From assembly GCF_000150275.1 (NCBI RefSeq), contig NW_002060947.1:5433229-5497228 (forward strand): a stretch of DNA of 64,000 nt, in the 5' to 3' direction. This document shows positions 2,637-58,589 of the stretch, piece by piece. Every line of letters begins with the position of its first letter. Position 1 is the first letter of the stretch. The notes below the pieces were generated by a model. That model did not search any database and was not told the origin of the DNA. It saw only the letters and a list, made by a program, of their open reading frames with translations. This stretch comes from Trichoplax adhaerens (taxonomy: Eukaryota; Animalia; Placozoa). The translations under genes were made by a program, and so were the position numbers.

Positions 2637-5529
2637 ATGGATAACAGTCATCATAAACAAGCTAATATCACCAGGCCTAAATGTAATGCGAAAATTAAAC
2701 GAGCTGGGCCTTATTTATTAGGACCTCGTGTTGGTAATTCACCTGTACGTAGTATTGTTCAATGTTTAGCCAAGTTAGAAGGGACTGATCAATTTTATAC
2801 TATGAAAATATTAACATTGAAAGATCTCACTGAAGAGAAACAAGACGATATCCAGGGTAAAATGTTAATGCATACCGAGTTTTCCTTGTTGTCATTACTT
2901 CAAGGTGAACCTGGAGTTGTTCAAATGCATCGTTTCTTTCAAGATGAAGTTTATGAACAGCCTACAGTACCTTCATCGCCACCACCGCCATCGCCAGCCA
3001 ACGATCGAAAACACGATAATGTCAAACAACTTCCAAAACGTAAACGTTTATGCATGGCTTTAGACTGTTTATATCCACACGATTACAATCATAGTTCCGG
3101 CGATTTAATCAACTGTCAGCACTATGTTATAAGAGAGAAGAGACTATCGGAAATGGAAGCAATCATGATATTTACCGACATCATGAAAGTGGTTGAAAAT
3201 TTACACAAGGTACGGTAACATCATAAAAATGCAAATCTTTTCAATCAGTCAATGGTATTCGAATATTCATCCGAGGATTGAATTTAGTTCAAATGGATTC
3301 CTTCTATCCGCAATGTTGGACTCTCTTTACTGACTTAATATCCTATCAGCTATTACTATAAAGCTTATTTTTTGATTCAATAATAGCGTACATGTACAAT
3401 AGTGTTAGAAAATTCTTGTTGTCCATACTACTCCTTTTGTTATTATTTTCCTCCTATCTTATGTTCAAATTTTGTATTGGCAGAAAAACATCGTTCACCG
3501 TGACTTAAAACTAGGCAATATGGTCTTAAATAAAAGGTATGATTAAAGTTTTCCTCAATTTTAATTTATTTTATACAGCGATCAAGAAATACATGTACGC
3601 CATTAAACTCATCCCTGCAATAATACATACATTCCGTATTTCATATTAGTTGCAGTATAGTATTAAATTGACAGACGCCAAGCTTCTCGGCTTTCTTCAC
3701 CAAAGACGTAAATAAATGAGCAGAATTTACTAAAATCACCTAGTCAGCAAAATGCTTGCCTATCATTTCTATTGATGTAACTTAATTAATAATGATATAC
3801 TCAGCATGATGGAAGTGTGAAATTGATATCGTGCAATTAATGACGTAACAAATTAGCAGAATTTACTAAAATCGCCTAATCAGCAAAATACTTGCCTATC
3901 ATTTCTACTTATGTAACTTAATTAATAATGATATACTCAGCATGATGGAAGTAAATTGATATCGTGCAATATATTGCAAGTGCTATTGACCTCAGTTTAT
4001 AGGTACGTATGCTTAATTAATATGAGTGCAATGCGTATCTACACACACTACCATGAAGTGCTTGCTGATTGATCAATATCCGCTCTGTAATAAAGTATCA
4101 ACTCGTGTACAATTTGTAACAAACACCTATATCATTATACTATCCATCTTCATAATGTACATTTATTTCTACATTGCCGAAATTATAACTATCATTACGT
4201 TGGCTTCGCTTAATATCTTCAAGAAATAACAATCCATAATAATATATTTGGTTAGAACTAGACGTGTTACAATTACCAACTTTTGCCTTGGCAAACATTT
4301 ATTAAGTGATGATGAATTATTGACGGATCAGCGAGGCAGTCCAGCATACATCAGCCCAGATGTTTTAAGTGGTAAGTACTTTATGGTACTAAAAGTAGTC
4401 GAGGTTGATCACTAAGTTTAGAAACTTAGGATACTTTATATTATTAAAGTATTAATGTGCTAAGTACAAATAAATTAATACCTGATTGATTCTCATTCAT
4501 ATTCAGCACAAAATCAAAGTATGTTTTAATTTGCTACACTCGTATAACTGCAACAATTCTAGGTACCCCTTATGCTGGTAAAGCTAGCGATATTTGGGCT
4601 CTTGGTGTCGTTCTCTTTACCATGCTGTACGGTCAATTTCCATTTTATGATAATATGCCTCACGAACTCTTCAGAAAAATTAAAGCTGCGGAGTACCTGC
4701 TGCCTGAGTAAGCCAGTATTAGACTTAACGGCTCTACCAATTAATCTATGCTTTAAATCAAATTTTCTTTTAGTAAAATAACTAGATAAATTAGCAATTT
4801 TATTAATTACCAAACTAGGCATAAACTGTTGTGACAAAATGAAATACCACAACAGGATATAATCCTCCTGTGACGTACAGTAATGTTATTTTGACTTGAC
4901 AATTAACGGATTTTGCTTCTCGTATACTTTCTTTAGTGACCATAGAGTTTCTCCTGCCGTAAAATGTATTATTAAGAAAATCTTAGTCTTGAACCCTAAG
5001 AAGAGGCCCACTGCATCTGACCTACTTCGACATTCCTATAGTTTACTATATACCTGGTAAATTTTCGATATCAGTTCGTCCTTACGATAATATTATCTAA
5101 AAACTATTATTATTACTGCATTTAAAAGGGTTATTATAATAAAAAAATCTGTTTATTCGACTGCTAATAGTTTACATCTCGACAATTTCGAAAAAAAACA
5201 GGTTTATTCCGAAGAGTATTGATGAAAATGATCAGTGCGTACCGGAAATGCCCAGCGATGACATGACTAATACTATGGACAAAGTAACACAAAAAGATGA
5301 GAAAGATTTAAGGAAGCAATGCCTACAATACTTTGATAATTCATTCTATGGCAAGAAAACACAATTTTTAAATATGCAATTATTAACAAGGAAAAGGAAA
5401 GCAGCGTCCATACCAGTACAAAGTATACACGAAGACGCCCGGCCGTTAACACCTGTAGAAACTGAACTTATGTCGAGAAGAGGATATCTTCAACCTTTTT
5501 CACCTTATTTATCAAATAATCTGAACTAA
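2637..5529 (+). CDS. STK40: Serine/threonine kinase 40 (Tribbles-related pseudokinase), 6 exons
   Basis: Exons 2637-3209, 3484-3536, 4256-4371, 4563-4707, 4937-5056 and 5202-5529 have GT-AG introns and splice in frame. Motifs KRAGPYLLGPRVGNSPVRSIVQCLA, IVHRDLKLGNMVL, ITNFCLGKHL (NFC in place of DFG), DQRGSPAYISPDVLSG and WALGVVLFTMLYGQFPFYD match STK40. Confidence 0.95.
3705..3970. repeat. Tandem duplication (2 x ~135 bp) in STK40 intron 2
   Basis: 'gacgta...gcagaatttactaaaatc...cttgcctatcatttcta...atactcagcatgatggaagt...aattgatatcgtgcaat' at 3705-3837 and 3842-3970. Confidence 0.9.
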
Positions 5530-15026: not shown

Positions 15027-16320
15027 TTAGTATTTTTTGACTGAGGCGTTAGCGTTATACTCGTTTTGCTCATTAGTAACTGTGATATTATAATGGCTGT
15101 TATTTTGGCTGCTACTTCGGCTGCTATTTCGGCTAATACTTGGAGACTGTATACTTGGCGACATTCGAGAACCATTTACTTGGAGTACAGATAAATAGTA
15201 GTGGTCATCAGTACAAATAGTATTATCTCGAGTAGTAATAAGGTTAGGTTGGATGGAACGACTATAACACTTGGTAGCCATATTTCGTACACCACTGACG
15301 CAATGAGCCAAATATCGTCGACAAAATAACGGTAGACAATTAAAACATTTAAAGAACACCCTTCGCAATAACATCACATCAGTGAAAGTATAAATAAATG
15401 GATTAATAGCCGAATTTATAGGCAAAGCTATAATGACAACAAATTGTATTTCAAACACATTACTAGTCTGTTGGATAATGGCACGATATAATGTATAATA
15501 GAATGGTAACCACGAAACTAAATCGGATATAATAATAATAAATAATCGAAATGCAATAGTTTTATCTTTACTCTCTGTTGATCTACGGATCATTTTACTA
15601 CTTTTACGAATGGAATTAAATATTGCAAGATATAAAATGGCAGTAATAAACCAAGCTATGATAGTAATAATGGTATATAAAATAATCCAAGCACGATAAT
15701 AAACATTGATAACATTACTTGGCATGCAAATACTAGAAAAGTAATGTAAGCGTTTATCACCATCTTCATTAATGCTAGTTATTGTTGGAATAATACAAAA
15801 TGTAAATGAGGTTATCCAAGCTGCCAAGATAAGATAACGAGACTGCGATGCTGTTAATTTACGAGTTGAAAATGGAAAAACTAGACATATATAACGATCA
15901 ATAGTAATGATTAACATCATTAAAACCGACATCAGGCTAGAACAAGTACCCAGTAACATCGCAATAGAACATGACCAACTTTTCAACCAAGTTTCAAAGA
16001 TACTTCCATAAATTCCATGGTATGTAAGATCAGCTACAGCAAGAATTAATAAGTAGATTGCAGTCGTAAAGTCTGCCAATGCCAGATTGGCCACGAGTAA
16101 GTGGGGCACTTTTACCGATCGACGTGAATTAATAAAATATTGGACAATAACGCAGATATTACCCACTAACGCAACCAATCCTGTAAACCAGACAAATAAT
16201 TGTAGAGATAAATGTGTTAATAAGTTACGGCATAATGATAGGCCTCGAAAATTTGTCTCGGGAGTGCATGTCGTTACTTTAGACGGAACTGCACAACATA
16301 GGTAATCTCGTGTTGTTGAT
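15027..16320 (-). CDS. Hinge + 7TM + C-tail exon of the LRR-GPCR
   Basis: ORF 15027-16355 with an acceptor at 16321-16322. Hinge YLCC..TCTP..GLSLCRNLL, TM1 GN, TM2 LLVANLALADF, TM3 TIDRY, ECL2 SSICMP, TM6 SDLVSWLP, TM7 PINSAINPFIY. These are typical of LGR/RXFP-type receptors. Confidence 0.95.
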
Positions 16321-19300
16321 CTAGAACAAGAAAAACATAAATTATGATACGTCATATTTAACGTTAGCTGGAATTATACAGCATAGGAATTCTCATAATG
16401 AAGATCTCAAATACGTGTAAGCATAGACATAAGTCTGAAGAGAGCATAATATAGTAGAACTTAGACTGTAATATTACACATGAATAACCTCACTTCTAAC
16501 AATCTAAAACAAAACAACAGAAAGATGAAAATGTTAATCTGATGGGAACACGGGTAACCCGTTACGTCAGTTGGAATTCTGGTCATGGTAAGTAATCTAG
16601 TTACAAAAATGCAACTATTAAAATAAAAGAATATATTCCCGACGTATAAGATAAAATTTGCAATAAATTAATGTTCATCTAATGTAGCAATCTCTATTAC
16701 CCGAGGTTATTGAAACATCTCTCAATGCCATACATTTTATCGTTACGTTTATATGACTATACCTGATTTTTACTGACCTCTATATTACAATTTAAAAATT
16801 TTGCATTATCTGTTGACAAGTTTCTAGCATTTAATGTTTATTAATAAAAGTATATAATATCTCACTATCATTCTAATTATTAATGATGATACTGTAAATA
16901 AATTAATATTAACTATTAAAGATTTGAGCAAGGATCTAAATATACCGTCCACATCCTACTTTCGAGAGAAGTTCAGTAACGTATCAATAAAATCATTCTG
17001 CTTTTGTCCTGACAATATAGACGTTTATTGTATTACTGACTCTTAACATCACCAAATCAATGTTTCTACTGATCTTTATAATAATTTTAATGCTTATTAA
17101 AAGTATATGATCAAAGCTATCCGAATAAGTAGGAGATATACAAATCCTACTACTGCTATAAAATAATATTTCTTGATTATGGCTGTAAGCGTAGTAGGAT
17201 TTTTTCTTTCCAATAACATTTCGAGAGTAAATATTGTTAACAATAATATGTAGGGCATATAACAGACAGTGGCATCGCAAAAATATCTAGCAAACTCTCA
17301 TTATACACCTAAAGGCATGCAATAAAACATATATTATTAAATATTATATTTCCTATATATTAAAAGTGTTCATCAGACACACAAACATTTTATATGAACA
17401 TAAACTTACACCGACTGTAATAAAACCGGCCCATAAAATGATTCATGGGTTAAACTGACCAAACTATTTCGACGCATAGATCTAAACAGACAGATAAACA
17501 GCAAAAGCATGTCTAGTTAGCATTACTACTGTGTATTGGCTTAGTTACTGACAGAATAGCAATATTCAGTATACTATTTTCCGAACAGCTGTTATATAAA
17601 TTGGGGGATATAGTCTATTTATATACTTTCGGATAATAAAGATTCATCATCTTAATAATAGTCATAGACACACAAGAATTAACGGCTCCTTATTATACGA
17701 AAGTAATGTAATCATAGTAGCATTCAACTAGTAAAATTGAAAATCATTTTATCAGAGATAAAATCGATGAAATTTGTAATTTTCGTCAGATGCGACATTG
17801 AAGTTAAGAATATATAATCAAATTCTCTGTTAAAATCACTGTGTTTTATTCATATAATATATAAATAATCGGCTTAGAAAATAGCACGTTCATTTTAATC
17901 TCTTATGCTTGGTACGCCAAATGCCATAAAATACGTAACTAGGGCAACAATACGTGTGATGATATTACTACATCTATCAGATCTATCCAATGTTCCATCA
18001 CCAGTCATATAAATGATACAGAAACATTAACTGCATTATTACGATCATATATTTATCTGCATGTTACGTGCATAATTTTGATATTTAGTTCAACTCTTGA
18101 TGAAATTAGATGCGTCAATGATAACTATTATCAAAACCATTACTGATAGACAAGTATGTAAACAGACTTCGCTTCACTTCCGCTGGGATGAATAAAATCT
18201 ATGTCTAATTTCAGAATTGAGTCAGTAAGGATGATAATTAATGGTAATACATTCTAATTTAGCCTACGTTCATAACATAGATAAAACTAATTTAATTTAA
18301 TTTTGGACATATAATGGAGTAAATATGCTGATTTTAGTTATATATAGAAATATAGTAATCGATAATATTTTGATAACATGCTAACTAAGTTTTTTTAAAT
18401 TATAATAGGTACGATTTAAAAGACTCTTGTTCATGATCTGATCTCTAGTTGATAAATAAGGCATATAACTTAAGTAGCTTTTGTATCCTAGTAAAGAGAG
18501 ATAATTCTCCGAATTATTGATCTAATGTTGTAGAAAGTTTTGTTTATCAAAGCTAGCTATTCTGCAAACGAGCTAATTTGATGTATGTACAGATCCTGTA
18601 ATAAAATCTACATATATTTATTCGAAATCTTTAGCGATCGCTAGTGGCTTTTAATCAGAGAAATAGGTATTAGTACATACGCCTACTTACACTGCCTGTA
18701 AATTTGATAATCCTCTAAAGCAGCCAGATGTTAAAGAACGAATTCTATTGTTATCAGCATACCTAGATTTAATAAAATTAACCAATGATTAGTATGCTAA
18801 TTTCTTTACAACAGTTAGCTATAAACTGATGATCACAATAAAATCATACAAGTATTCCAATTTAGGAAAAACGCCAGGAATATAATTTGTTGCACAAATG
18901 TCATGAAAGTTATTTTGAGAGATATTCCTATAATCAATTAAATATGAAAAAAGTAAATGTAAATGAAATATTTTAGATAATTTTGGCTTTATCTCTTCAA
19001 GACTAACAGTAATTCAAGTCCATTCAGACAAATTTTGCTAGATTCTGGAAACGCTGACAAAAAATTATGGCTTAAATCGCTGAAAAAGATAAGACAAGCC
19101 TTTGCGTAAGAACGAAATAGAAGAACGTTACAATGTATTGATGAACCATATTTATTCATACAATACTGGAAATAAATGGACAATATCAATTCCTAGATGA
19201 ATATATCACAAACATATTGACTATAAGGCCCACAGGCAATATTTCCATAACTTCTAATTAACATAACATCAAAAAATGTCGATATTTTTATATTATAAAT

Positions 19301-22300
19301 ATGGCTTACAGTCTTTCTAAGTTATCTTCAGAATCTTTAAACAAGATACTGGAATCGAAGGTATAGAATTTATTGTATTGCAAATTCCTGAAAAGAGAAA
19401 ATATAAAAAATATTTTTAAGTCTCATGTACCATAATGTTAAGCGTTATGTAATTCCATAAACCAAGTACTAACAATGACAGTAGGAATCCGCGCAAGTGT
19501 TGAAATGTGCCGTTAGGCAAAGTGGATAAATTGCTTCTTGCAATATTTCTGATGAAAACAGACATGAAAGAAACCTTCATAAGTCATCGTTAAGTTTCTT
19601 CAAAAAGACGTGCAGTTACCCTAATGTAGCGATTAGAGCTTGATAACTTACATTTCGAATGTAAAGCAGTCGCGACCGACGGTATTCAGATTGCACCAAT
19701 ACGGAGGTTGTATAGCGGAGACAATTTCGATTATAGTGCTAGTAGTCATATTGTTATTCCCAAAAGATCTAAAGGATGACAGAGCATTCGTTGATTCTCA
19801 TTATAAACTTGCATAGTAATTATGAAAGAAGAAATTAAAAATAGCATGAAAGCTGATATTTTAAAAATTTCTTCATATTTCCTTCAGTATGGTAAATAAC
19901 TAAAAGAATATTATCATAGCAGAATAGCTGCCCAAGAATCAATATCAATTACTAATGTGTAATTTTCTGCCTCAACAGTTTAGTTATACGGTATTTACGA
20001 TAGACCAAAATTGCATATCAATTGCAGTATATGAATAGCACTTACAATTGTCTCAAATGAGTGGCTAATTTGAAAAATTCAACTGGTAGAGAGATGATAT
20101 CGTTGCCAGAAATGTCACTAATACAAAGCGAAAGTTGATAGAGCAAAATCTCAACGACAGTATTACTTATGGATTTCTTGAAATAATCAATATCAAAAAC
20201 TTTTAACCGATTATTGATGACTTACATGCTTTTTAATCGTTTATCCTTTATATTAATCAGAACATTTTGGTAAAAATTTCCTAAGTAGCTTTCCAGATGA
20301 TTGTTGGCAACACCTCTTTAAATTTACATAGAGTTATGTGATCTAGTTTATTTGATAACGATATGATTTACACCTTTAATAAGTTAAAATATTTTATGTT
20401 CACTCACACGGCATACATATGCTCTAACGTATGTTTACAAGGTGCAGAAATAGTCTTAAATTCATTGCCATTCATATATCTGTAAAATAAAATTATATAT
20501 TAACGATTAAAAATTTTAATGTTTACATCAGTTATATATTTACGAATTATTAGGTTAATATCATCATTGCTATATGAACATAAAAACCCCCAACATCGAC
20601 ATTCGATAAATATAATGTCAATTCTTGGCTCATACTGCAACCGCTGACGAGCAAGATACATGTACAACAGCGTTCTATGGCTCCAATTAGACCTCAAACT
20701 CAATTTTCTCTATAGCAACTTAAATTACTATATGTGATCATCAACGTTTTATACCATCAAGTCTATGAAGGAAAGATGTTCACATCGCAAACGTAACATA
20801 GTCATCCCTAGATATCCTACCATAACGTCACTGATAACAATTTATTTTCTCTCAGCATTATCTACATATTCAATGTAGATAACGGCATATATTTGCATAT
20901 ATTATCAGTTTATCTAATTTTTGTCCTCACAGCTAAACTTTAGATAACCTATAAAGTAAGCGACTGATAATAATTTATTCTTGTCTAAATGTTAGCAGGT
21001 AATCTAATTCATGTCCATACGGCTACGCTATAAATTTAGTTGTTTTTCAATGAGAATTTACGGTTAATAACCTAAGGAAATATATGTATTTAGTGGTGGC
21101 TGTCCGACAACAGAAAATTGTCAGCAGCTGCAACATAACTTAGTATTGGTTTATAGATCAATATTAGCCATGTTTAGTATAATGTACTGTAGCTTAGCCT
21201 ACTAAGTTTAATAGAAGACGTACTTAGTATTCAATAAGCATAAACCATAAATGAATATTTTATGTTAGAGTACAGACGACCATACACCGTAGAGTGCTAA
21301 ATCACTATTAANNNNNNNNNNNNNNNNNNNNNNNNNNNNNNNNNNNNNNNNNNNNNNNNNNATAAAGTAAGATGGAACATTTGTATGCTGATTGTAGCTG
21401 CATGTGATACCCAGAGTATATCAGCAGCCGACTTAAACCAGAAAATCAATAATCATTTTCATTCTGGCTCGATTTATCTAAGTATAAATTTTATTTTAGA
21501 ACTAAAGAGGATAATTAGGTGTCATTTTAAAAGAGTTTTGTTAGCGGAGATAGTACTTTATGTAACAAGTCTTGGTTTGTAACACTAGTATGAAATATTG
21601 GCCGTCAGCTGAAAAATATTCAAGTTAAAGTGTTAACTAAGGATAATTAACAGGTAAGTACACATGGAACAATAAATGGTCATCTGAGCGTCTAGATATA
21701 GCATGAGCTTAAAATTAAGGCTTAACGACTTACAAATTTTTAATACCCTCAGGAATTGATTCACACCGCCAGTCAGAAATCCGATTATTATTTAATGATC
21801 TGTTTGATATGATATAGAATATTTATAACTTTTAGTTTGAAGTTATACCATAGAATCATATGCTAGCAGATCTTTATTTTAATTCTTAGATATGATTCAG
21901 TATAAAATATGAAGTTAAAAGTCGAGAAAGTGCATTAATCTTACATGGTAGTTAATTTATTTGCACCGCTAAAAGCATGACGGCCTATGATTTTAATGTT
22001 ATTTCTGTCCAAGTTGCTTTTCGTTATTACAATTAAAGACAAGAAGTCAAATATAAGTTTCAATATATCTAAGACTTATAGCTTTATAAATCAGCATATA
22101 CCGCTTTTCATTTAGAACATTCACGTGTAAAGATATTTTCAATTTATTGCACTTCACAATATACAAATCCAGTTAAAGTTAATGTCGATATATAACCTCT
22201 GCATTCATCACCAAAAATATGCTATTTTTGGTGACGACAAATTTTCGTCGCTTGAATCAAAATGATAACAAATTTGCGGCAGTTATAAAGTAAGTTATTG

Positions 22301-25300
22301 TATTTACATATCTTCAACAAGCATTTGATCATCATAATGATTTCGTAATGATAGCGTAAAGAATCTAATAATAAGGAATTGCTATTACAAATAAAAAACA
22401 TGTATACAAATTTATCTGCAGTATATAGTCTCTGCACCCCCACTAATATGGTACTAAAATCAAAATAATCTTGCAAAAAATTTACATTTAAGCAGATCAA
22501 ATGAAACTATCTCCTAACAAAACCAATCATTATTCACGAACAATAGAGCATTACCGCATATGACAGATTCTTTCTTAGCTCAGAATTTAAAATAACCTAA
22601 TACTAGTTATTGTAATAGCATAACAACTTACATCGTCTTTAATTTCTTAAGGTGTTTCAAAGGAGAAGCTTCTAATGTGATAATTGAATTTCCTTGTAAA
22701 TCTCTGATGTATTACAAATTAAATCAAATTAATCAACAGCTTGAGACTCAAAACCCTGAAAGTAGCCTATAAGAATATATTGATTAAAATATCTCACAGT
22801 TGCAGTAAAGACGCCAAATCTTGATGAAATGAGATGTTAACATCAACGACTTTATTGTTATCCAAACTCCTAATCAAATCGAAAAAATGATGATAATATT
22901 TCTAAGCTTTCCCAACATATGTTACTTTCATTATACCATTTCCGATATAGTAGCTTATCCTCTTTGTCAATTTGAAAACTCACAATTTTTGTAGAGATTT
23001 TAAACCTTGAAATGCGCCTGAAAGAATCACTCTGATATCGTTATTTCCCAAGTTTCTGTAAAGTTTTATAAATTAAAAAGGAGAAATTTATGCATATATA
23101 ACTACGGTTAATATTTGACAAAATACCGCAGCAAAATTTAAAATTACTCTATAACGATAACAAACTGATAATGTAAAAATTGTAAACTTAGTAATAAATT
23201 CAAAATATATTTTATCTAAATAAGAGATCATTCATATCTTAGAAGTGACTGAGTGATGAGGAATTGCATTGTAGTTACTGTACAAAGCAAACTATACCCA
23301 TATATCATATAGCTATCCGTAAGATAAGAGATAGATTAGAACTGGCCATATCAATGCATAACTAACATAGTAAGAGCAATTAAAACGCGCAAATTATGCA
23401 TGTGGAACTACCATCAAATTTTAAAAAATATTCTGCTGCAATTCAAAATTATTCTACGATGCAAACAAAATTATAACAAAGAAATTATTAACTAATTGAT
23501 AAAATAAAAGTAATTTTATCCATATATGGGATTATTTATAACTGGAAGGTAGCTAAGTGATGCTGAATTGTACTGTAATAGCTATATAAAGTAAAACTGC
23601 ACACATTGGTCACACAGCTATCCGTAGGATAAGAGATAGGGTGGAACCCAGCAATGTCAATACAGAAAACAAGCGTTACAAGGATAATTCTCTTTATTAG
23701 CAAACCACATGGTAGATTAGCTAGCTTAGCAATAGAAAATTAAAGTTATTCATATAATCTCCTTACGCTATAACTTTGGCCATGACACCCACTTACAAGT
23801 TATCTAAATTGAGATTTGATTGAAATATCCCATTACTTAATAAGACAAGACGATTATTACGCAAGGACCTATATGGTGTTGTTTAAGACAAGTGATGAAA
23901 GTTTATACGATTGATTTGTGGTATTAATTTATAGCGACACCTAAATAGCAAATAATTACAATGATTTTAAACTTTTTAAGTAGGATAAATCTGTTGATAG
24001 AAGTACCATTATCCTGTTATCATTGATGTTCCTGATGGCATCATAAATATAAATCAGTAATCATTTGTTATATCAACAAAAAATTAGCTGGCTTACAATT
24101 TCTCTAAATAAGTCAGGTATCTACTAAAGCGTAAATTTTCCAAGATATTGAACGATAAATCCCTGCTCAAAATACGCAGTAAAAGAAATAGTAAAAATAT
24201 ATTAATCGCTCTCTGTCTTTTATCAATTTTTATGGAGCCTAATAATAATAGTATTTTGTAGTTTAAGGAAAAATTCGGAATATTATATAGAATTAATGTA
24301 TACTCACATATAAGTTAGCTTGTGACAGTTTTGAAATGTATCAGTCCGAATATTAGAAATATCATTGTCCCGGAATATCCTGTTAGATATCGAAATTGAT
24401 AATAATGTTGGCAAATATTTCTAGACATATGTTTCATGAATGAATTCTGTTATTAAATCTTTAAAGTTTAATTAATAGATAGTTTCCTCATGATATAAGG
24501 ACACTTACAAATTTCTAATCATGTCTCCGTTAATCCAACTATCAAGTATATTCTTGTCAAGTCGATGAAGATTATTGTGACTTAAATCGCTAGTCGTGGT
24601 AGTGTATGTAAAATATTTTGGTGATTAAATTACTTAGGTACTTATTTAGAATCACTCTCACGATCTAAGTGTAGGCATAAAATATAACAAACATCTAGTG
24701 AAATGTGATAGTTACGGAATTTATAGTAGTCATTGAAATCCTATCTTTTAAGTTACTGATTTGCAAAGATGGAAAGTGATACATTCATAAATGATTCAAT
24801 GTAGCTAATACTTACAGCCAGCGAAATTCTGACATTACTATAATCTAATGTAACAATATTATATTTATTTAGTCTAAATTTCTCTATAAGTCTAGATTTT
24901 AGAGCTGATACACTGAACATATAACATCTAAGCTAAAAGAAGATGAATGAGTAACGGATCTAATCAAATAGATATTGCATTGCTAATTCGATTTCTACTG
25001 AATTTAATTTAAAATCGGACATAACAAAAAGGAAAAGCTAGACTTTTTTCATATCTTGTAACCTGTAAAGGTTTACAGGACTAATGATTGGTAAATAACA
25101 TAGAATCTATTAAGCATCTCCTGAAAATACTGGATAATAGTATAACAGCTAAGCAAATTAGAGTAAAGTTGTAGGAAGTCAAATTGGGAGTAGCAACATT
25201 AAATTACTCAAACTAAGAAAATTTTATCAATTTAATCCTACTGTTCTAGATATTATTCGCATCTTCAAGTGACAATTGCAATAATATCATCAAATAGAGC

Positions 25301-28300
25301 CTCTAAAATATGATTCAACATGCCTGATAATTCTAAGATAGCATGCTAAAAGAAGTGCGTAACTTATTCATTAATAATCTCTCGTAATCATTAGACATCA
25401 AGATTGCTAATAAATACTTTATCTTACAAAAATTTGTTATAAAATTTAATATTATTTGTTACATACAGTGTAGTTAGTGTGGTCAAATTCTTCAATTTGA
25501 GTACTTTAGATTCATCAAAAGCGTTACCGGATAAATTCCTAAAGAGAAAATTCTATATTATAGTAATATTAATCTATAAATTACAAAGACTTAAAGTATT
25601 GATAATCTCAGCAAATTGGTTAAAAATGTTTGTTCTTTCATTATGTTGTATAAGACCTTCCTAATTTAATATTTTAATATTAAAAATCCTAGCTAACAAT
25701 TTATGATGTACGTGTATACCAGAAACTAATATCAACTAGTTATCATTAGTGTTCTTTCTACCTATAGAAGTTTGCAAGAATTATTTGTTTAAATGATATT
25801 TTTATGTTTGTAATGATTGACTTACAAGACTTGAAGGCGGATCATCGAGTTGATAGATGGTATAGAATTGACATTGCCATTCGATAAATCTCTGCGATGT
25901 TATAATAGCGATGCCGATAATTAAAACTTCGACAGATGATATTTAAATTAATTACTTAAAATACTTGATATTTAGAGTTATCGGATAACTACAGTACACC
26001 TACAGTTTTGTGATATTTTTCCATATCTCGCTTCCAACTGCTTTGACCTCTGTTATGATATTAGAATCAATTTTCCTGTAAATTGGCATTTATGTATTGT
26101 AAAATAAAATCGAAAATTTTATCTTTGCCAGGATTTCATGATCTATATCGTAATAATTTAAACTATATAATAATTTTAATCGTAAAATACTGTAATGGTC
26201 TTATCAATGATATCATCAATTTCCCATTATTTAAGCATATGACAGAATTTTTTTCAATTTTCTATTCGATAGAATAAGAATTTTATAATTTGAAATCACT
26301 CAATTTAGCTATCGAGATTTTGTAAAAGCTATTAGGATTATAACTTACAGATCTTGTAGAGCAGGACAGAATGATTCAAAAATTTCCGCTGGATTACTTA
26401 TGCGGTTTCCTCCTAGCCAACTAAATAGTATGTAATCATAATTATTGGCATTCGTTAGCACAGTATCTTTTCGGAGAAGACAGACAGTTATTAAAGTTGT
26501 TACATTATTAGGCTATATCGCAACTGAATAAATTAGATAAACAGAGAAATTACTCATGACTACTTTACTCTATGCAACTTACAGATATTTTAATTGATCA
26601 AGTCCACAAAATGCATCTTGACTTATTATTTTAATAGCGTTGTTTCTTATTTGTCTAGTTGAAACATATATGTGCAAAACACTTAGTACTCAGACTAAAA
26701 TAATATCCATTCATTGATACGAGGAAATCTCAACAAAAACTCCAATTTGATATCGCAATCAATTAATTAATTAATGTATTAATGCAAAAATTTGCGTCGA
26801 TATTCTAATGAATTAGCTTACAGTCTTTGTAATTGAGTTAAGCCTTCAAATGGACAGTGTTGAAGATGTACAATATTATTTTCGTCTAAAATGCTGGATA
26901 AGTATCGTGATTTAATATGCAATTCAACATGAATAGTACATAGTAAGCCATATCTATGAATACTTACAGCTTTTGTAGCTGGTTTAAATCTCGGAACATG
27001 CTGTTGTTGATTGATACCAGATAATTATATGATAAATCTCTGTAATTAATAGAAAGTAATCTATTAAACACGAATCAAGAATTCATAGTGTACCATTAAT
27101 TCTACAGCATGTTTTAGTTTGAATGAAGGAATAAAAAGAATATGATCATTTACAATTCCTGCAAAGTTGAAAGACCAATCAACGCATCATCCTCAATTAA
27201 CGAGAGACGGTTGGAGCTTAGATCACTAATTAAATATGATAGATTTGAAGGATTTTGGTTAGTTTTCGTTATTTTATCGTCTATTCTTAACTTACTTAAA
27301 CTAAAAGTCACATTTTAAATTGATTATTTACACACTACTGCACGAATTTCACTGTATATAATGTCATAAGCTGCGCATACATTGTTTCTATCGTCTTCAA
27401 GCCTTCCAAAACACGATTTTCTAATCTGCTAATTTCGTTTACTGATAGATCTCTAGGCATCATTAATCGAATTTTAAGCAATTAATACCACAATCATCTT
27501 CTTGAAATGCTTGCTATGAATTATAAATGTTCTTGAAGACTATTTACAATGTTTTCAATTGCACCAAATCCTGGAATTGATTGGGCTTCAAGCCAGTGAT
27601 TTTGTTAAAATATAGATTTCTGGGGTAATGACGATCAGAAATATTATATGACATTAAATTCTGTTTTAATGATTGTTACTCTACGCAAATATAGCAATTG
27701 CACTGCGAAATTTAATTTTCAAAATTTTTACAGCGAAATCATAAACTTACAAAGTCTGCAATTGATTAAGCCCTTGAAATGTCACATTTACCATGAAACG
27801 GATATTGTTATATGGCAATTGCCTGCCACAAAATATGGTTAATATTATTAGTAAGTACAAGTTTGTTATTTGCTATAAGATTATAGAGAGATTTAAGAAA
27901 AGAATTTTTTTTGTTGATCAAAAATGTTTCTGCTCAATTCTGTTTCAAATTAGTAATTTCCGATTTACAATATCATTATGGAATAAGAATCATCATTACT
28001 AAATACAGAATAGCAATGACTATGAAAGTAAGCAATTTAGCCGCAATCTTTGACCGCATTATAATAAGGACAGATATATCGAAGCGAAGCTTTGAAAACT
28101 GCGATAGGAATATTATGACTATACAGTAGATATGTAATAGTGAACAGTAATTAATTTTCTCTAGCTTCATTAAGTAGCACATTTATATCCGTAGCTTCTT
28201 AAAATAAGGCAAATTCAGAAGGCAATTTAAGAACGACAAAGCTATTGCAGATTTCCGTGAAAAGCTGCCGAAATAGCTAGTAATGTTTATTCTATAAACT

Positions 28301-31300
28301 AGCTAATTCTAGAAACTGATTATCTCTTGTTAGAAAATTGAACGGGAATACTTATAATCTCTACCAAATCGAATTGTAGGTAAAAAAGAACTTACAAATT
28401 TTGTAAGGAATTCAGCTGTTGTTGAGAGAAAAATTGTCCTTGAATTGTTTGTAATACTCCATTTGAAACTAATCTAAAAGTCCGAATGAATTTCTAAATG
28501 ACCCTTGATATCACTACTAACGTACAGCCTCAATTTAGCCAATAGTTTAAAGCCTATGCTATTTATTCGGACTTACAATGTTCTGAGCTTACGTAATGGG
28601 TAGAATATCTCAGGTTCAAGGGCTAAAATATTATTCTGTTCTATATTCCTACAGATATTTTGCAGAAAAGATATCGGTAACGATTAAATATTGATAATAT
28701 AGTAAGAATTTTATAGCTAAAGCATTATTCATCGCGATCTAATACACTATAAATATTTCATAATAAAAATTAGTTTAACATCATTACTAGTCATTTGACT
28801 CCCATCTATTAAATTATCGATGTAATCTAAGCGGATTTAAATTAATAAAATGGATAATATAGCTTTCGATTTTTGTATCTTAGGAAGTACGAGATATTTC
28901 CTACAAAATTTGTCATCGGATCGAATACCACCTTATTTGATGGTAAAACTAGTAATAGCAAATTTGTGAGCAATAAGTATTTGTGAATTAATTCATAAAC
29001 CAACTCACAAAAAAAGTAATCCTGAGCAATCGCTAAGGCTTTTCGGTTCAATCCATTTTATCCGACATCCTTCTAAATTTCTGTAATATTAAATTTAGGT
29101 ACTTAGAATATTTAAAACTTTCGTCTTTGGTCCAAAATGTGCTACTTAATAATACAAGTAGCTTTCACGTCAATTTTTTGTATGGATATTTATACAAAAT
29201 GGTTCAGTTATGACTTACAAACTTTTAAGTTTAAATAAATTTTTAAATGTCGTAGAATTAATTCTCTGAATATTATTCCTTGCTAAAGATCTGTCAATGA
29301 TCGAAATCGGATTCAAATAAAAATTAGAAGATTGATTAAAGAAATTTAAGAGACTGGCAAATCGTGAAAATCGTCCCTTAGATAAATTATTTACAGTATC
29401 GACTTTTCTAAATTACGTTAACTATGTTCTGATACTTACAAATGGGCCAGAGAAGGTAATCTGGTAAATGCTCCATCAGTAATTGAGTTAATTTCATTTT
29501 CATTTAATAACCTAGAAATATTCGACCGTAAGATTGCAAATTAAGTTTTTAGGTATATTTTAAAACATCAAATTTTTAAAGTGCTTGGTACATGCTATAA
29601 TAACAAAGATAAAACATGAATATACTATATGAAATAGCCTTACAGTGTTTCTAAACTTGTCAAATGAAACATTTTAGCATTTATCATGCTTAACCGATTA
29701 CCAGCTAAATTTCTGGTCATAAATAGAAATTAGATTAGCATCTAAATTAACACTACTGAATTATTAAAAATTCGAAACTGATTAATTATTCGAAAATCTT
29801 ACATAGTTCGCAAAAATTTGAAACCATTGTTATTAAACGCGTCTTTCCCAATATCTTTAATTCTACAGTTGCTAGCTGAACTACAAAATTAAAAGTTAGC
29901 AGACAAAAGATTAGCCCTACAGAGCATTCCATTCTACTGTACGTGTATGCAGGATACCAGAATCAAATCATTTAAAATAATATACTACAATGTTTCACAG
30001 TTTAAATTTTACTACTTCTTTTTGAGAAACATTACAGTATAGTTGTGATCTAAATGTACTACCGGATAATTATTTTTAAGTGAAATTAAGAGTTAAAGTT
30101 GATTTCGTTTTAATTAGTCAAAGTTATATAAATTCGTAACTAACACTTGCATATGATGATTATCAACTAATAATCTACGACTTATTATTAGTTATTACGT
30201 TAATAAAACGGGAACATATGATTATTTCCAAACTGAAAATCCTCCTTCTCTAATTATATAATACTATCACGGTATGATTGCAATTTCCTGTAATTCAACT
30301 GCTGTAATATAAGACATAAAGCTAGATACCATTAGATTATGCAATATGACAGAAACCTAATTAATTTCTGAAGATTTATGTAGAATTGTAGTTTTCTTCA
30401 AACTAGATAAATAACAATATATTACATCAGATAAATTATCTCATTCTACTAAATTTTTAGAAAGATGAAGAGAATGCAAGGATAAATTATTCCCATAATT
30501 ACCAGGTATAAAAATTAAAGCCATTTATCATTAAGAAACTTACAAATATACGAGCTGTGTCAGACCGGCAATGATACCAAGGCGAATTGATGTTATGGGA
30601 TTGTTATTAAGGGATCTAATTTAATTCAAATCATTAATATACCACATGAAAGTATATTGGTAGAAAAACAGTCTCTACTATATCGTCAATTACTGGTAAA
30701 TTCAGTAACGAAAGGGAAGATGTTTTATTATACGTCATTACAGTGATATTAGGTTTGCCAAATCATCAAATGTTCCGTCTTCAATGTAAGTTATAGAATT
30801 TCTTGATAAAGATCTAATTAAAAGGCAAATAATAAAAATTTTTTTTATTGCCGATTTATTGATAAAGTTAAGTTTCTTCTCATAGTAGATCATTTTCATC
30901 TAGAAGTAATTTACAATTGTTTTAAATTTGATAATCCCGAAAACATTCCTCTGTTTACTTCAACCAAAGAGTTGATTTCCAGCGTTCTACGTTAATAATA
31001 ACAAAAGCTAACATATCAATTTTTCGTATCATTTCTTGAATAGTTATTAGCTGCGAATATACTATTCTATTATAGTAAATTTTATAAGCGTTTACTATGG
31101 ATTATCTTGCTTTCTAATATAGATTTATTAAATCACTATCAACTACTCTCTACGATGAAATCATAAAATCAATTACATTAAAGGTAGTCAAATTTTTAAA
31201 TGAAGTATGATCAACTATTGACTTTGTTGATTGTATAGTTAAAGGTATAATGTTGAATAGACAGTAAACCCAGATAAGTATTTGATAGGCAAAACAGAAA

Positions 31301-33945
31301 TAGAGCTCGCAATCCAACACTTCCATTATTAGCCAAACTCGTTATTTTAACGGGTATATACTGCTAGTGAGATATGAAATTATTTCTAAAAATCCTTCGT
31401 TAAGGTTTATCAATACTAGTAAAGTTTTTGGATATCCTTGTTTATATTTATTCACCACTTGTTCAATAAAAATACGCGTATTTATAATAAATGGAAGGTA
31501 AATGGCATAAGTTTTTCTATATAATGTACGTATTCTTACAGATTTGTGAGGTATTGCAAGTTTTGAAATGATCCGTTACATATTGTTTTAATCTTGTTTG
31601 CAGCCAAATTTCTGTATATCCGGATTAATAAATAGTTGACAATCGTTAAATAATTAATTAAAAAATGACTCAAAGTATCCATTGATAAAATACACTCATC
31701 TATCCGAGATGAAAAACAAGCTTACAATATTAAGAGCCCACGTAATCCATAAAATGTTTTATTACAAATTTCTTCAATAGCATTGCTGGCTAAATTCCTT
31801 TATGAAAATATAACGTATTAATTATGAATAATAACTAGTTCATCGTTTACATTAGTGTCAATTAGTACACATTATTTTACTAAAAGAAATGTGAATTTAA
31901 AAATGCCCTCAACTCTAAAGATTATCAAGCATTACAGGTTTATGAGATTAGGAATCCATAGAAATGGATTTTCGTCCATAGAATCGATTGAGTTGTCATC
32001 TACGAATCTTTCAAATATAGCAGATAAAAATATCCAAAAATAGCGAGGTGAAAAAGTGGTTTTAAAGTAAGTGTCAATAAAATAAATCATAGCGAAAAAG
32101 GACGTACAACTCTCTCAGATTTGGTATTCCAATGAAATGTTCATTGCGAATACGCTCGACTTTATTGGCTTGTAAGTTTCTAGAGATAGGTCAAATTAAT
32201 AGACCAGAGCAAATTCAGTATTTAACAGAATAAAATGATGCAAATAATTCTATATTCGATTTATAGCTCGGCCATGAAAATTAAAAGAAAGTAATGTATT
32301 TATTTTAGGATCGTAAAAATTGTTGAAGTCTGTTCTTATTTGAAATATTTACAAAAAAATACAGTTAAAATATATATGTGTAAAACTTCTAACGTATCGT
32401 AGGGTAATATAACAATATTATTATATTTTTAGCACTAATATGAGTATACTTATCATTAGAATCTCAACCAGATTACATACCAATTTATCCATGTGTCCAA
32501 TTAGATACATAGCTGGCATTACATGCATTTTACTGTTTATATTACTGTAATTTACAGGAAATTGATCAGAATTTATAGTTACGCCTTGCACACGAGATAA
32601 TTTCAAAGTAATAATCAAATTGAATAAGGCGTTACTAGTAGTAATTAATGTATTAATTTAATTTTTATTTTGGAATAGAATATATATATAAGTTTACAGC
32701 TATTAATAACGCCTTCTAGATGGTTTAAAGAAAATTTGATTTGACAACACTGCTAGGATAAATCGTCAATAACTACATATTTCAAAGTTATTAGATAATC
32801 CAACATGTACAAAGACAACGATATTATGGCGTAATGCGATAAAACTTACCTCGATTTCAAATTAGTTGTTACTCTATAACTAAGAAATATTATTTGGGTT
32901 CATAAATTCATATTCAATAGTTATGAACAAGTCGCTTAGTTTTTTAAAGCGTAATTACTGTCAATTTTTGTCAAGGTGTTAATTTTGTATCCCTCTTAGT
33001 AGCTCGAAATATGAAAGTTGTCAGGATCTGTATACATGTACACAATGATGTATACAAGTTCGTAACTAATAATTACAACTAGTTCATTGTAACTCTACCT
33101 AAGCTTCAGTAATACTTATAAATAGTGTAAGGTATGATTGTAGGTATGACAACGATTCTAACTTCAATTTAATAATGCAAGGTGTTATAAATTGCATCAT
33201 AAAATATACTCACAGCGTAGTCAAATTGCTCAAGCCACTAAAAGTTCGATTGGAAAGATATTCGACGTCATTATGGATTATCTGTCCTATTTCATTATTA
33301 AAAGTGTTACAAATTCATATTTCTACTTATAATATCAGCTTTTGCTATTTCTGAAATATCAATTTATATATACATATGCAACAGTTAAATAGTACAGAAT
33401 ACAGTATCCATCAACTCCACATAACGGTATAGACATACAATATTTGCAAGTTCGGATATCGCAAAAAGCTATAAGGTGGTAATAGCTCCAAATAACTGTT
33501 TCTAATCCACCTGTAATTATAATAAATAATATGCTTGAATTAAGCTTTTATGGGGTGGTATGGAATAGGGTATTTTCATTTGAAAATTTTCTTTATAACA
33601 TTAGCGATAAGCTTTGAATTACATGTTTGTCTTCGTTTTATCCGTTGTGCTCAATTGGATAACAGAGATTGATATATCAACGCAACTGATCGATTGATTG
33701 TTACAAGTACAGCCAGTGACGCAAGTCGAGGAAGTAGCTAGAGAAAAGTTAAAGGTATTAAAATTTTAGCAGATATCTTAGATAGAGCAACTGTTACGAT
33801 AATTAAAACTCTTTTTCATATGATCAGTCTAGTCAAATGGAGAAGGAAGCTGCTATCCAGTAAACTTACCGTTAGGTAAAAGGGCAATACATATTACTAT
33901 TGACAGAGGGAGCATATACGTTGAAAGTGATATATAGCCCATCAT
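15027..33945 (-). CDS. Very large leucine-rich-repeat-containing GPCR (LGR-like, rhodopsin class), ~49 exons, roughly 1600 aa if all intact exons are included
   Basis: Signal-peptide exon 33870-33945 (MMGYISLSTYMLPLSIVICIALLPN). LRRNT exon 33623-33737 (CVTGCTCNNQSISC). About 46 LRR exons between 17410 and 33510. Terminal hinge+7TM exon 15027-16320. Intron phases are compatible along the chain except for one exon (33214-33286). Linkage across the N gap at 21312-21361 is assumed. Confidence 0.8.
23241..23690. repeat. Diverged direct duplication (~140 bp, period ~300 bp) in an LRR-GPCR intron
   Basis: 'gaagtgactgagtgatgaggaattgcattgtag...agctatccgtaagataagagatag' (~23241-23380) versus 'gaaggtagctaagtgatgctgaattgtactgtaa...agctatccgtaggataagagatag' (~23544-23690). 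Confidence 0.75.
24816..24881 (-). pseudogene. Decayed LRR exon with in-frame stops but intact splice sites
   Basis: ag|A AAT TTA GAC TAA ATA AAT ATA ... CAT TAG ... TGG CT|gtaag. It is 66 nt, phase 2-2, and begins NLD* like neighbouring LRR exons. Confidence 0.6.
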
Positions 33946-43160: not shown

Positions 43161-44077
43161 TAACCGTTATGTGAGTGCAATTGGCAGACGGACAGAAGCT
43201 GTCCCNNNNNNNNNNNNNNNNNNNNNNNNNNNNNNNNNNNNNNNNNNNNNNNNNNNTTCGTCACCGGTTGAAAAGGAACGAGCCCATGTGCTACGAGTGA
43301 AGTCATCCAAACGCGTCACTTGTTGCACTGGAAATCAGTCATTTGCTTCTATTTGGTGTTTCTTCTTGGCTGAAGAGTTGGATAGCGCATTTAGCGTGAT
43401 ATTTGCCTAGCTGACAGTTGGTTAATGTCTTCAATCGGTAGCTAAGAAAATTCAATTTGGCCTACAAGCATTGACTTTGAATTTTCTGAGCTTCGGACTA
43501 GCGACCATCGGTACTGTAGTCGACAACCTCACGTATACGATAGTATCAATAGAATCTCTATCCTCGTGGTTTTAAAGCAAAGCAGTCATTTGACCGGAAA
43601 AAATTTTTCATTCACCAGTGACGTTGAATCGCCACGCCATTGACTGACCTATTGAAAGTGTCTTCGTATCTTTTCGCCTTGAAGCTTCAACAGTGGAGTT
43701 TTACACAAATATCAGATTGCAATAACGTATCTGGTATCTCATTATCCAATAGTTATACTGACCTTTTCAAGATTAACACAAAGAATACTCAAGAAAAGGG
43801 TCGTCTTATCGGTGATCAAAATCTGTCGTTTAGACAAGTTTCAATTGAACTTCACCAAAGCTTCTCCAGTTAGCTACTGTGCGATCTATAGTTGCTTTGC
43901 GGTGTCCCCTAATTGGGCAGAAGAGGGATTATTAGTTTAGACTTTGCTTAGTCTAGCACAAAATATCCCCTAACTCTTGGTTCCTGCCGGACTTGTGAAA
44001 TATTCATTTCACGCCATTGTCAAAAGTTCAGCGATCACTGATTACCTTGCAAGCTACAAGTGTGGTAGTACTCGAAT

Positions 44078-56666: not shown

Positions 56667-58589
56667 CTATGAATTTATCAGACATCTGGTATCGTCTTCA
56701 ATATCAAGGGATTCATCAGCAGTAGAATCGACTAAAGCAATCTGTGCCATTGCAGCAATGGCTTCTAAAAATGGAATAGTAAATAGAAAGAATTAATAAA
56801 TGATTTCATCGCTATGAATTATACACCATTTCACGAATAAATAAATAAAATTAAAACGAAATTAAAAAAAATATCTTACCTTCTTTTCTGGATTCATTGG
56901 TAGTTTCTATATTACTACTCTCCATATTAGTAGATTTACTCCCAATAACGATAGGAAAATCGACGTGTAGATCCTTAGAGAATGGAATAATAGCAGCTAC
57001 CTAAAAGATTCATAAATAATAATTTATTAAATCTTGTAGCAAAAGATTAAGCTTCTTTATTGATATCAGTTCTCTACCTGAAATATATAGGTTACATTAA
57101 CATTTAATGCAAGTGATTGACTAGTAGGAGGAGTACTCGGAATAGGAATAGTCTGATTACTGCTTTCATAAGTCTGACAGGGAGAAATTTCATTTTTTGT
57201 ATATAACTCCTGTATAATTGTGCGTATAGTCTTGGTATGGCCTATCAATTCAAAAATATAGAATTTATTTCTAGCTGGTGGCTTTTATAAATTTGCTAAG
57301 ATATCAACAATCAATTTTAGATTAAACTGAAAGTTTTACCTTCTGCTGCTACAGCCAGACAGCCGATAAATCTTACTCGGAGACATGGAATGGTTCGATT
57401 GGACAAATTTTGGCATTTAATATCTAGTGAAATAGACTCCCCTGGGCGATAACCGCTCCGATCAATACTTGCATTTAGCTTAACGAGTCCAGGTCGAAAG
57501 CAGAAACAGCAGAATGATATATCATTTTGAAGTGGAGATGGTGATTGCTTATTAAGTAAAAAGAATTATAAACGTTAATTTTGGGATGATTTAGCGAGAC
57601 TGTGTTTAACATTTCCGATATCGTTATAGGCACTGTTGATGATATCATCCATAGGTATAATATATTTCCTTTTCGTGATTGAATTAAATATCAATATACA
57701 CGCAAGAGTCAGAAATATTAAAACATACGTATACAGTGTATAACATATGTGGATCACACAGTAGGATATAATGTGATGTCGGAGTTGCCTATTCATCTTC
57801 TATGGATACTTACTAGTAATGTTGGGCCAATATCAACCTGCTGGGTAACCTGAAAAGCCAATTCCTGCTGATGATCATCATTGGGAGGATTTTCTAAAAT
57901 TGCAACCATATTATAGCGGATATAGCAATCTTTACCACCTTCAAGTGAACTTGGAAGTGCAATATCGGTTGGTAATTGATAGCTAAACTTGAATTCATTT
58001 GAGCCTTCTGGTAGTGTTAAATTACTGATTCGAGGTTGGCTATCTTCTATGCAGGAGAACAGAAATAAATATTATATTCGATAGGCGCAATAATAACGAA
58101 TATTTATAATCAGACCCGCAGGGATACTAGCTTTAAACGAAGTAAATTTATGTTATTCTTAATAGACTCATTAAATATAGCTATATAGTAACTTGAGAAT
58201 TCACTTGTATAAAATTTGCAAAGTATTTTAAAATATTACTATTTAGTTCCTAATTTTTCTATCGAACGCTGTAAAATTAACTTATTGATGAAATTACATC
58301 TCTGCATTCCTTTCTTAATAGTAGTAATACCTTCACCCCAAATGGAAATTGTCGTATCTAAGTAGACTTGCACTTCTTTATAGATATAGGGCTTGCTTCT
58401 AACTGATATTCGAGATTGAACACCATCTGAAACTTGAGTACATGCAGTTCCGCGAAAACGAAGACGAATAGCTCTAGCATTCATCGTATTTCTCAATTGA
58501 ACTCTAATAGAACCTTCTATTACTTCACCAGGTGAATATTCTGCATGTTCTTTATCAAGAATAATTTGCAATTCGATATCTTGAGTCAT
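56667..58589 (-). CDS. Arrestin-domain-containing protein (alpha-arrestin/ARRDC family), 6 exons
   Basis: Exons about 58331-58589, 57814-58047, 57340-57547, 57078-57241, 56880-57000 and 56667-56764 splice in frame. Arrestin_N motifs YSPGEVIEGSI, IRLRFRG, LPEGSNEFKFSYQLP, LPSSLEGG..YIRY. Arrestin_C motifs CCFCF.PG.VKLNASIDRSGYRPGESI, IPSTPPT, PIVIG. Confidence 0.9.

Follow-up and report, generated by a model that had tools for sequence, protein, structure and literature searches.

The window, a stretch of 64,000 nt of Trichoplax adhaerens DNA (contig NW_002060947.1), carries on its minus strand one signal-peptide exon, one LRRNT exon, 46 exons of a single LRR each and one exon for hinge and 7TM domain. 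Joined, these exons (E1 to E49) give an open frame of 1624 codons, as checked by spliced translation, in the domain order signal peptide, LRRNT cap, 46 consecutive LRRs, short family-specific cysteine-rich hinge, rhodopsin-type 7TM domain and Ser-rich tail.

Gene model and the LRR exon array

GT-AG splice sites are present at all modelled exons, the donors being mostly GTAAGT or GTAAGN. The introns of the model have a median length of 132 nt, and 11 of them, of at least 350 nt, are interspersed with those of about 130 nt. The junctions of E1, of E2 and of the 34 upstream LRR exons (E3-E36) are based on sequence signals together with contig-length arithmetic. In the following list, E3 to E35 are given according to the joined-frame model and E38 to E48 according to RNA contigs.

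33870..33945, minus: E1, signal peptide with its start codon, 76 nt, 3' end in phase 1; in-frame stop before the ATG, hydrophobic core, donor gtaagt
33623..33737, minus: E2, LRRNT cysteine cap, 115 nt, phase 1 to 2; motif C-x3-C-x-C-x7-C
33439..33510, minus: E3, LRR exon 1, 72 nt
33214..33286, minus: frame-broken 47th LRR-like segment
32108..32179, minus: E4, LRR exon, 72 nt
31936..32007, minus: E5, LRR exon, 72 nt
31726..31797, minus: E6, LRR exon, 72 nt
31540..31611, minus: E7, LRR exon, 72 nt
30915..30986, minus: E8, LRR exon, 72 nt
30742..30813, minus: E9, LRR exon, 72 nt
30544..30615, minus: E10, LRR exon, 72 nt
29803..29880, minus: E11, LRR exon, 78 nt
29644..29712, minus: E12, LRR exon, 69 nt
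29440..29511, minus: E13, LRR exon, 72 nt
29219..29290, minus: E14, LRR exon, 72 nt
29009..29080, minus: E15, LRR exon, 72 nt
28577..28648, minus: E16, LRR exon, 72 nt
28396..28473, minus: E17, LRR exon, 78 nt
27751..27822, minus: E18, LRR exon, 72 nt
27548..27619, minus: E19, LRR exon, 72 nt
27381..27452, minus: E20, LRR exon, 72 nt
27154..27225, minus: E21, LRR exon, 72 nt
26968..27039, minus: E22, LRR exon, 72 nt
26822..26893, minus: E23, LRR exon, 72 nt
26583..26654, minus: E24, LRR exon, 72 nt
26349..26420, minus: E25, LRR exon, 72 nt
26004..26075, minus: E26, LRR exon, 72 nt
25826..25891, minus: E27, LRR exon, 66 nt
25467..25538, minus: E28, LRR exon, 72 nt
24509..24589, minus: E29, LRR exon, 81 nt
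24308..24379, minus: E30, LRR exon, 72 nt
24097..24162, minus: E31, LRR exon, 66 nt
23960..24031, minus: E32, LRR exon, 72 nt
23797..23868, minus: E33, LRR exon, 72 nt
22984..23055, minus: E34, LRR exon, 72 nt
22798..22869, minus: E35, LRR exon, 72 nt
22632..22703, minus: E36, LRR exon, 72 nt; 3' end read as a loose end after E37 in RNA contigs
21945..22016, minus: E37, LRR exon, 72 nt; RNA joint 21799/21945 in runs X5, X6 and X9
21734..21799, minus: E38, irregular LRR exon, 66 nt
21362..21608, minus: cryptic exon, used in a minor and unproductive splice form
21312..21361, no strand: assembly gap of 50 N
20408..20479, minus: E39, LRR exon, 72 nt
20226..20315, minus: E40, LRR exon, 90 nt
20046..20117, minus: E41, LRR exon, 72 nt
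19652..19768, minus: E42, irregular long LRR exon, 117 nt, two Cys
19474..19548, minus: E43, LRR exon, 75 nt
19310..19387, minus: E44, LRR exon, 78 nt
19008..19079, minus: E45, LRR exon, 72 nt
18850..18927, minus: E46, LRR exon, 78 nt
18691..18762, minus: E47, LRR exon, 72 nt
17410..17481, minus: E48, last LRR exon, 72 nt, family motif SFYGP
15027..16320, minus: E49, cysteine-rich hinge, 7TM, Ser-rich tail and stop codon; motifs DRY, WLP, NPFIY

All 46 LRR exons are in phase 2 at both ends and have lengths divisible by 3, from 66 to 117 nt: 34 measure 72 nt, four 78 nt, three 66 nt, and there is one each of 69, 75, 81, 90 and 117 nt. The codon split at every LRR joint has the form NT|N and specifies in each case one of the residues L, I, V, F and M, hence any skip keeps the frame as well as a hydrophobic core residue. 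With an HMM built from the LRR exons, 45-46 phase-compatible AG..GT exons are found on the gene strand vs none antisense. Pairwise identity among the LRR exons averages 0.40 for DNA (maximum 0.64) and 0.235 for protein (maximum 0.48), and the all-versus-all protein comparison of the 46 reveals no clusters of look-alike exons. The layout put forward in a preliminary description of this DNA (signal peptide, LRRNT, about 46 LRR exons, hinge/7TM) is thus borne out as a 49-exon open frame, and so are its statements that the LRR exons are mutually divergent and that each intact one has phase 2-2 and measures a multiple of 3 nt.

E3 and E4 are separated by an intron of 1259 nt that contains the frame-broken segment at 33214-33286, which scores 15-21 bits with the HMM and has a gtgagt donor. 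It presents no frame-compatible acceptor; read from 33286 or 33281 down to 33214 it measures 73 or 68 nt, and its inclusion leads to a stop codon. The segment is either a dead exon or the site of a 1-nt error in the reference; accordingly, the true LRR number may be 47 instead of 46, or an exon may have died here. Decayed pseudo-exons between the intact LRR exons were considered and rejected, as only this segment rises above background when the introns are scanned in all frames with the 46-exon HMM: other remnants reach at most 5.9 bits, vs a background of up to 11.9 bits on the opposite strand and beyond the limits of the gene.

Concerning the surroundings of the gene, a Pfam search of 14 long flanking ORFs gave one Arrestin_N domain above cut-off, with Pkinase and DUF7299 below theirs.

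Receptor class and paralogues

The 7TM exon E49 matches Pfam 7tm_1 with E = 7.5e-27. Its closest solved 7TM sequences are RXFP1 (3e-33) and TSHR (1.6e-31), together with LHCGR, FSHR and RXFP2, the whole set spanning E = 3e-33 to 1e-23 at only about 30% identity in the 7TM part. These receptors likewise consist of an LRRNT followed by LRRs, hinge and 7TM, and in the vertebrate FSHR, LHCGR, TSHR and RXFP genes hinge and 7TM are also encoded together in a large final exon, and the small exons carry about one LRR each. A 7TM domain closest to those of known LGRs, an LRRNT-capped LRR ectodomain on the same polypeptide and a cysteine-rich hinge place the product among the LGRs. However, the vertebrate glycoprotein-hormone and relaxin receptors carry only about 9 LRRs (PMC9545775) vs 46 here, and neither their long type A hinge nor the LDLa module of type C is found in the Trichoplax gene, where no LDLa exon lies between E1 and E2.

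The high LRR number (46 exons) and a hinge that resembles none of the types A, B and C are traits of the placozoan-specific LGRs, which are described from the same species as a large gene family with an ectodomain of LRRs only, in unusual number, and a short cysteine-rich hinge of their own (PMC9545775). According to that work (Hauser, Koch and Grimmelikhuijzen 2022, PMC9545775), Trichoplax has 41 such receptors with unusually many LRRs, Tadh-LGR-15 reaching 34, a number exceeded by the 46 (possibly 47) found here, and no type B LGR was found in this animal. In front of TM1 the present gene has the hinge motif STTRDYLCC..C..C, conserved across ten members of the family, and the longer form SFYGPxxLxTVxSTRDYLCCxVPAKVTxCxP is common to the paralogues P0010, P0015, P0017 and P0018.

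The own genome yields 98 matches and at least 55 paralogues, the best of them 48% identical. In pairwise comparison, identity is 34-48% for paralogues (E down to 6.5e-95) vs about 30% at E = 1e-33 for bilaterian LGRs, and the closest paralogue models contain LRR and 7tm_1 domains only. As the preliminary description had proposed, exon number was compared among paralogues: in the ten checked, 18-38 phase-2 LRR exons precede the 7TM exon, with no antisense matches, vs 46 here. Collinear exon-to-exon orthology with three of them is seen for the membrane-proximal E43 and E46-E48 only, the distal exons being too diverged. A query with the 7TM region of P0017 returned only this paralogue's own relatives, and no full-length H2 orthologue was found.

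The structure considered is that predicted for the database paralogue P0015, which stands in for the ectodomain of the 46-LRR gene itself. Its predicted fold is a continuous LRR solenoid followed by the 7TM, with full-length LGR4, TSHR and FSHR as top Foldseek matches. LGR4, whose family has 16-18 LRRs, is the best of these, although the 7TM of LGR4-6 (type B) is a far weaker sequence match (E = 3.5e-10) and the hinge differs. The model ectodomain by itself finds its best superpositions in the ring-shaped ectodomains of TLR8, TLR9 and TLR13, with TMq 0.42-0.43; the TLR7/8/9/13 ectodomains have 26 LRRs. TLRs, however, have a single TM helix and TIR output, whereas the Trichoplax receptor is a 7TM GPCR with no sign of pattern recognition; canonical TLRs are absent from placozoans (PMC6321704).

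Transcripts, assembly gap and exon usage

Spliced transcripts of the gene occur in three studies. The transcript data are assembled contigs of three transcriptome-size runs (X5, X6 and X9), one of them on record as RNA. The chain from E37 to the 7TM exon is identical and consecutive in all three, with 13 GT-AG joints, and no exon-skipping joint was found across these 13 junctions, which cover the 3'-most 12 of the 46 LRR exons plus the 7TM exon in contigs that drop rare isoforms. Besides the main chain there are only low-depth, unproductive joints, among them those of the cryptic exon at 21362..21608, seen in X5 only at a depth of 3-4 vs 17.7 and with a stop at codon 2. The longest evidence upstream is an X6 contig of 4363 nt in which 3037 coding nucleotides precede the 7TM exon, vs 3581 nt in the model, i.e. 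about 85%.

The assembly gap lies within the intron 20480-21733. It is bridged by a DNA-like X1 contig of 2779 nt that is collinear with the reference and supplies 172 letters where the assembly has 50 N, and the intron is removed in all three RNA runs through the joint 20479/21734; the gap is harmless to the gene. The preliminary description had left room for a pseudogene, or for two separate loci misjoined at this point, and this would agree with the gap being there at all and with the reference-derived protein P0001, which is limited to 305 aa within the 7TM part. P0001 is the sole relative from the locus in a search of representative proteins, where no full-length product was found, and no contigs encoding it are on record. 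Against the gap-spanning joint in three runs, the collinear contig, the 1624 codons that stay open, and transcription and splicing in three studies, such an alternative retains practically no weight.

Concerning exon usage, the preliminary description preferred to see the 46 symmetric exons as a menu from which subsets are spliced onto one constant 7TM. Phase, length and junction codon of the LRR exons are all compatible with this, and RNA contigs restricted to E37-E48 may miss rare isoforms. Symmetric phase is, however, expected in any one-LRR-per-exon gene, because exon duplication leaves it, and the architecture is common to 10 of the 10 paralogues checked, as exon duplication predicts. The uniform phase 2-2 structure would then be the footprint of repeated tandem exon duplication. 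Transcripts with differing exon subsets do not appear among the contigs of the three runs for the 12 LRR exons covered, a single contig contains most of the coding sequence modelled upstream of the 7TM exon, the introns are short and have strong donors, and a full-text literature search found no report of alternative splicing in placozoan LGRs. The likeness to Dscam or to agnathan VLRs is purely formal, consisting of many same-phase modules for parts of a recognition domain. Dscam has clusters of similar, mutually exclusive exons, whereas the exons checked here are consecutive and mutually divergent, without groups of similar alternatives. VLRs are assembled somatically at the DNA level from cassettes that lack splice sites, whereas the present gene is complete in the germline, has canonical splice sites and is matched by a DNA contig collinear with the reference. 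We thus regard a spliced menu as very improbable.

A milder version, in which the gene is mainly constitutive with a few cassette or dead exons in the 5' two-thirds, including 33214-33286, and an LRR count somewhat below or above 46, is unlikely too, if a little less so. The X6 contig is short of the model by up to about 7 exons, a shortfall equally explained by a contig ending inside the gene. The eleven longer introns scattered among the short ones and the 1-nt frame problem of one LRR-like segment also point this way, but that segment is the only intron remnant above background, and all modelled exons keep the frame with canonical splice sites.

The open 49-exon frame and an RNA chain without skipping, together with the 3037 upstream nucleotides in one contig, support the other option named in the preliminary description, a giant solenoid of over 1100 aa, and do not support combinatorial splicing. 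With a probability of about 0.85, the locus is one expressed, constitutively spliced Trichoplax adhaerens gene that encodes a protein of about 1624 aa belonging to the placozoan-specific LGR clade.

Proposed function and significance

In such a receptor the LRR solenoid would be the ligand-binding surface, for a protein or another macromolecule, and binding would be relayed via the hinge to the 7TM domain. As DRY, WxP and NPxxY are kept there, G-protein coupling is expected, and the Ser-rich tail may serve arrestin recruitment. Recognition diversity would stem from gene duplication and divergence, each of the at least 55 paralogues having its own array. To our knowledge, no ligand is known for any of the dozens of such Trichoplax LGR genes.

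The unusually high LRR number of the Trichoplax LGR family is already published (PMC9545775). Added here are an exon-level model for a locus represented so far by P0001, proof that the N gap is harmless, and RNA evidence against a splicing menu for the 3' third of the array. It is hardly probable that the full-exon main isoform is accompanied by cell-by-cell skipping of in-frame LRR exons, chiefly among the 34 upstream ones (E3-E36), and nothing here points to it. If true, rare or cell-specific skipping would be a new route to GPCR diversification, and the at least 55 giant LGR genes would then provide a much larger ectodomain repertoire for sensing microbes or food. As it stands, the locus displays an extreme receptor architecture, an LRR ectodomain of about 1190 aa on a family-A GPCR, with LRRs that outnumber those of vertebrate hormone receptors about fivefold. 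It belongs to an animal among the simplest, in which at least 55 paralogous genes, and not splicing, are the visible source of diversity.

Organization of the gene model

The curated model of the gene, a giant leucine-rich-repeat GPCR (LGR), comprises 49 exons (E1 to E49) on the minus strand:

33945-33870, minus strand: E1, signal peptide
33737-33623, minus strand: E2, LRRNT
E3 to E48, minus strand: 46 LRR exons
16320-15027, minus strand: E49, hinge, 7TM domain and tail

A first pass upstream of the 7TM open reading frame (ORF) yielded 24 clean 72-nt exons bounded by AG and GT and bearing the LRR signature, and the remaining LRR exons came from searches with a profile and from examining the stretches that separate these 24. 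All introns of the model are GT-AG, 33 of the 48 being at most 170 nt long (median 132 nt), and translation of the joined exons gives an open frame of 1624 codons. Every one of the 46 LRR exons starts and ends in phase 2, with lengths of 66 nt (three exons), 69, 72 (34 exons), 75, 78 (four exons), 81, 90 and 117 nt, while the junction codons are all split as NT/N, encoding Leu, Ile, Val, Phe or Met. The exons are mutually divergent (mean DNA identity 0.40, maximum 0.64; mean protein identity 0.235), and conservation among them is confined to structural LRR positions. On the gene strand the exon profile detects 45-46 phase-compatible exons, versus 0 antisense; as it was trained on the same exons, the gene-strand count arises by construction and the antisense zero is the informative part. 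The LRR exon signal is far above chance, and the exon structure given in the preliminary description, including the count of 46 LRR exons, is correct.

One additional segment resembles these exons:

33214-33286, minus strand: LRR-like segment, 15-21 bits, gtgagt donor, 73 or 68 nt

Its inclusion results in a stop. Either this exon died recently or the reference carries a 1-nt error here, in which case the segment could be a 47th exon. A profile search of the introns showed no other LRR remnants above background, so that the notion of numerous decayed pseudo-exons finds support at this single site.

Splicing and continuity across the N gap

Contigs of four runs were aligned to 16100-22099. X1 (138 Mb of contigs) has an even depth of ~85-90 across introns and behaves like a genome assembly; X5, X6 and X9 are transcriptome-size contig sets from three studies, X9 being on record as RNA. 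The identical 13 joints are found in X5, X6 and X9, each reading CT..AC on the plus strand and thus GT..AG on the gene strand. They connect E37, E38, E39 and so on through E48 and then the 7TM exon, with a loose end past 22016 corresponding to the 3' end of E36. Position 16320 falls at record position 1326 of a 4363-nt X6 contig, so that 3037 nt of this contig lie upstream of the 7TM exon, versus 3581 nt of upstream coding sequence in the model; judging from these lengths, one assembled transcript would hold at least ~85% of that coding sequence.

Two readings of the array had been proposed, a menu of LRR exons spliced combinatorially or a single giant solenoid. Within 16100-22099, no joint skipping a modelled exon was seen in the X5, X6 and X9 contigs, a result that covers E37-E49 and refers to assembled contigs, which lose rare variants. 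Additional joints occur in X5 alone, at a depth of 3-4 versus 17.7, and define one cryptic exon:

21362-21608, minus strand: cryptic exon (X5 only), reached from E38, running into gap sequence and then joining E39

Since it has a stop at its second codon, this form is unproductive noise. The mostly short introns, together with donors that are mostly GTAAGT or GTAAGN, would also favour constitutive splicing. Combinatorial splicing is hence not supported, the same 13 consecutive joints recurring over E37-E49, whereas the giant solenoid is supported by the uninterrupted frame and by the RNA joints linking LRR exons to the 7TM exon.

Concerning the N gap, it lies inside the intron at 20480-21733. 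One 2779-nt X1 contig spans 21311/21362, with 172 letters in place of the 50 N of the reference, and the joint 20479/21734 is seen in X5, X6 and X9; therefore, the two sides of the gap are contiguous and the flanking exons are joined in frame in the mRNA. A word of ~31 nt at 21162-21193, with a depth of 1250-1600 in X1 versus ~89 around it and also raised in X5 and X6, is a high-copy repeat adjoining the gap and probably caused it. Two more N stretches, at 12097 and 43206-43256, lie outside the gene.

Receptor family and paralogues

The sole long ORF in the gene region (15027-16355) encodes a rhodopsin-type 7TM domain (Pfam 7tm_1, E = 7.5e-27), whose closest solved relatives are RXFP1 (3e-33), TSHR (1.6e-31), LHCGR and FSHR, whereas LGR4 matches far more weakly (3.5e-10). 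The E49 product displays DRY, WLP and NPFIY motifs and a Ser-rich tail. The 46 T. adhaerens LGRs catalogued by Hauser, Koch and Grimmelikhuijzen (PMC9545775) include 41 placozoan-specific receptors, which combine unusually numerous LRRs with a hinge region of their own, as exemplified by Tadh-LGR-15 with 34 LRRs. The present gene belongs to this already known family, and shares with its paralogues the hinge motif SFYGPxxLxTVxSTRDYLCCxVPAKVTxCxP.

A six-frame search of the 105.6-Mb, 1414-contig genome with the 7TM exon returned 98 matches at E < 1e-10, ~55 of them full-length 7TM exons with 34-48% identity. The 20 kb upstream of each of ten paralogues contain 18-38 phase-2 LRR exons (antisense 0), counts that are lower bounds from a profile trained on this gene. 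Two paralogue proteins encoded on the same contigs bear the names TRIADDRAFT_56630 and TRIADDRAFT_53796 of T. adhaerens. In the protein models of paralogues, LRR and 7tm_1 are the only domains. Exon collinearity with three paralogues is limited to the membrane-proximal E43 and E46-E48; divergence thus lies in the distal repeats, which presumably set specificity. Two 7TM proteins from other public assemblies, P0002 and P0003, have 57% identity to the 7TM exon, versus at most 48% for the T. adhaerens paralogues, and are possibly orthologues from a different placozoan lineage.

Two neighbouring ORFs were also annotated:

58239-58589, minus strand: ORF of 116 aa, Pfam Arrestin_N (E = 3.3e-12), ~24 kb from the LGR gene
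2637-3218, plus strand: ORF of 193 aa, Pkinase match that is weak and fails the Pfam cut-off (E = 0.008)

The former probably represents an exon from a gene of the arrestin family; a placozoan expansion of alpha-arrestins has been reported (PMC6321704). The latter may belong to a kinase gene nearby, as one of its exons.

Predicted fold and possible function

One mRNA joins LRR exons to the 7TM exon (X5, X6 and X9 contigs). In the model predicted for the T. adhaerens paralogue P0015 (mean pLDDT 76.8), an unbroken LRR solenoid precedes seven helices. Taken as a whole, this model is matched best in Foldseek by full-length LGR4, TSHR, FSHR and LHCGR. For its ectodomain, estimated at ~28 LRRs from ~700 aa, the best superposition is with the ring-shaped ectodomains of TLR8, TLR9 and TLR13. 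By extrapolation, 46 LRRs would either spiral through more than one turn or be split by the irregular, Cys-containing E38-E42.

In the proposed mechanism the solenoid would bind a macromolecular ligand, the signal would pass via the short hinge to the 7TM domain, and the latter would couple to a G protein. Placozoans are described as being without canonical TLRs (PMC6321704), and therefore a role of this gene in sensing microbes or food is conceivable, albeit as pure speculation.
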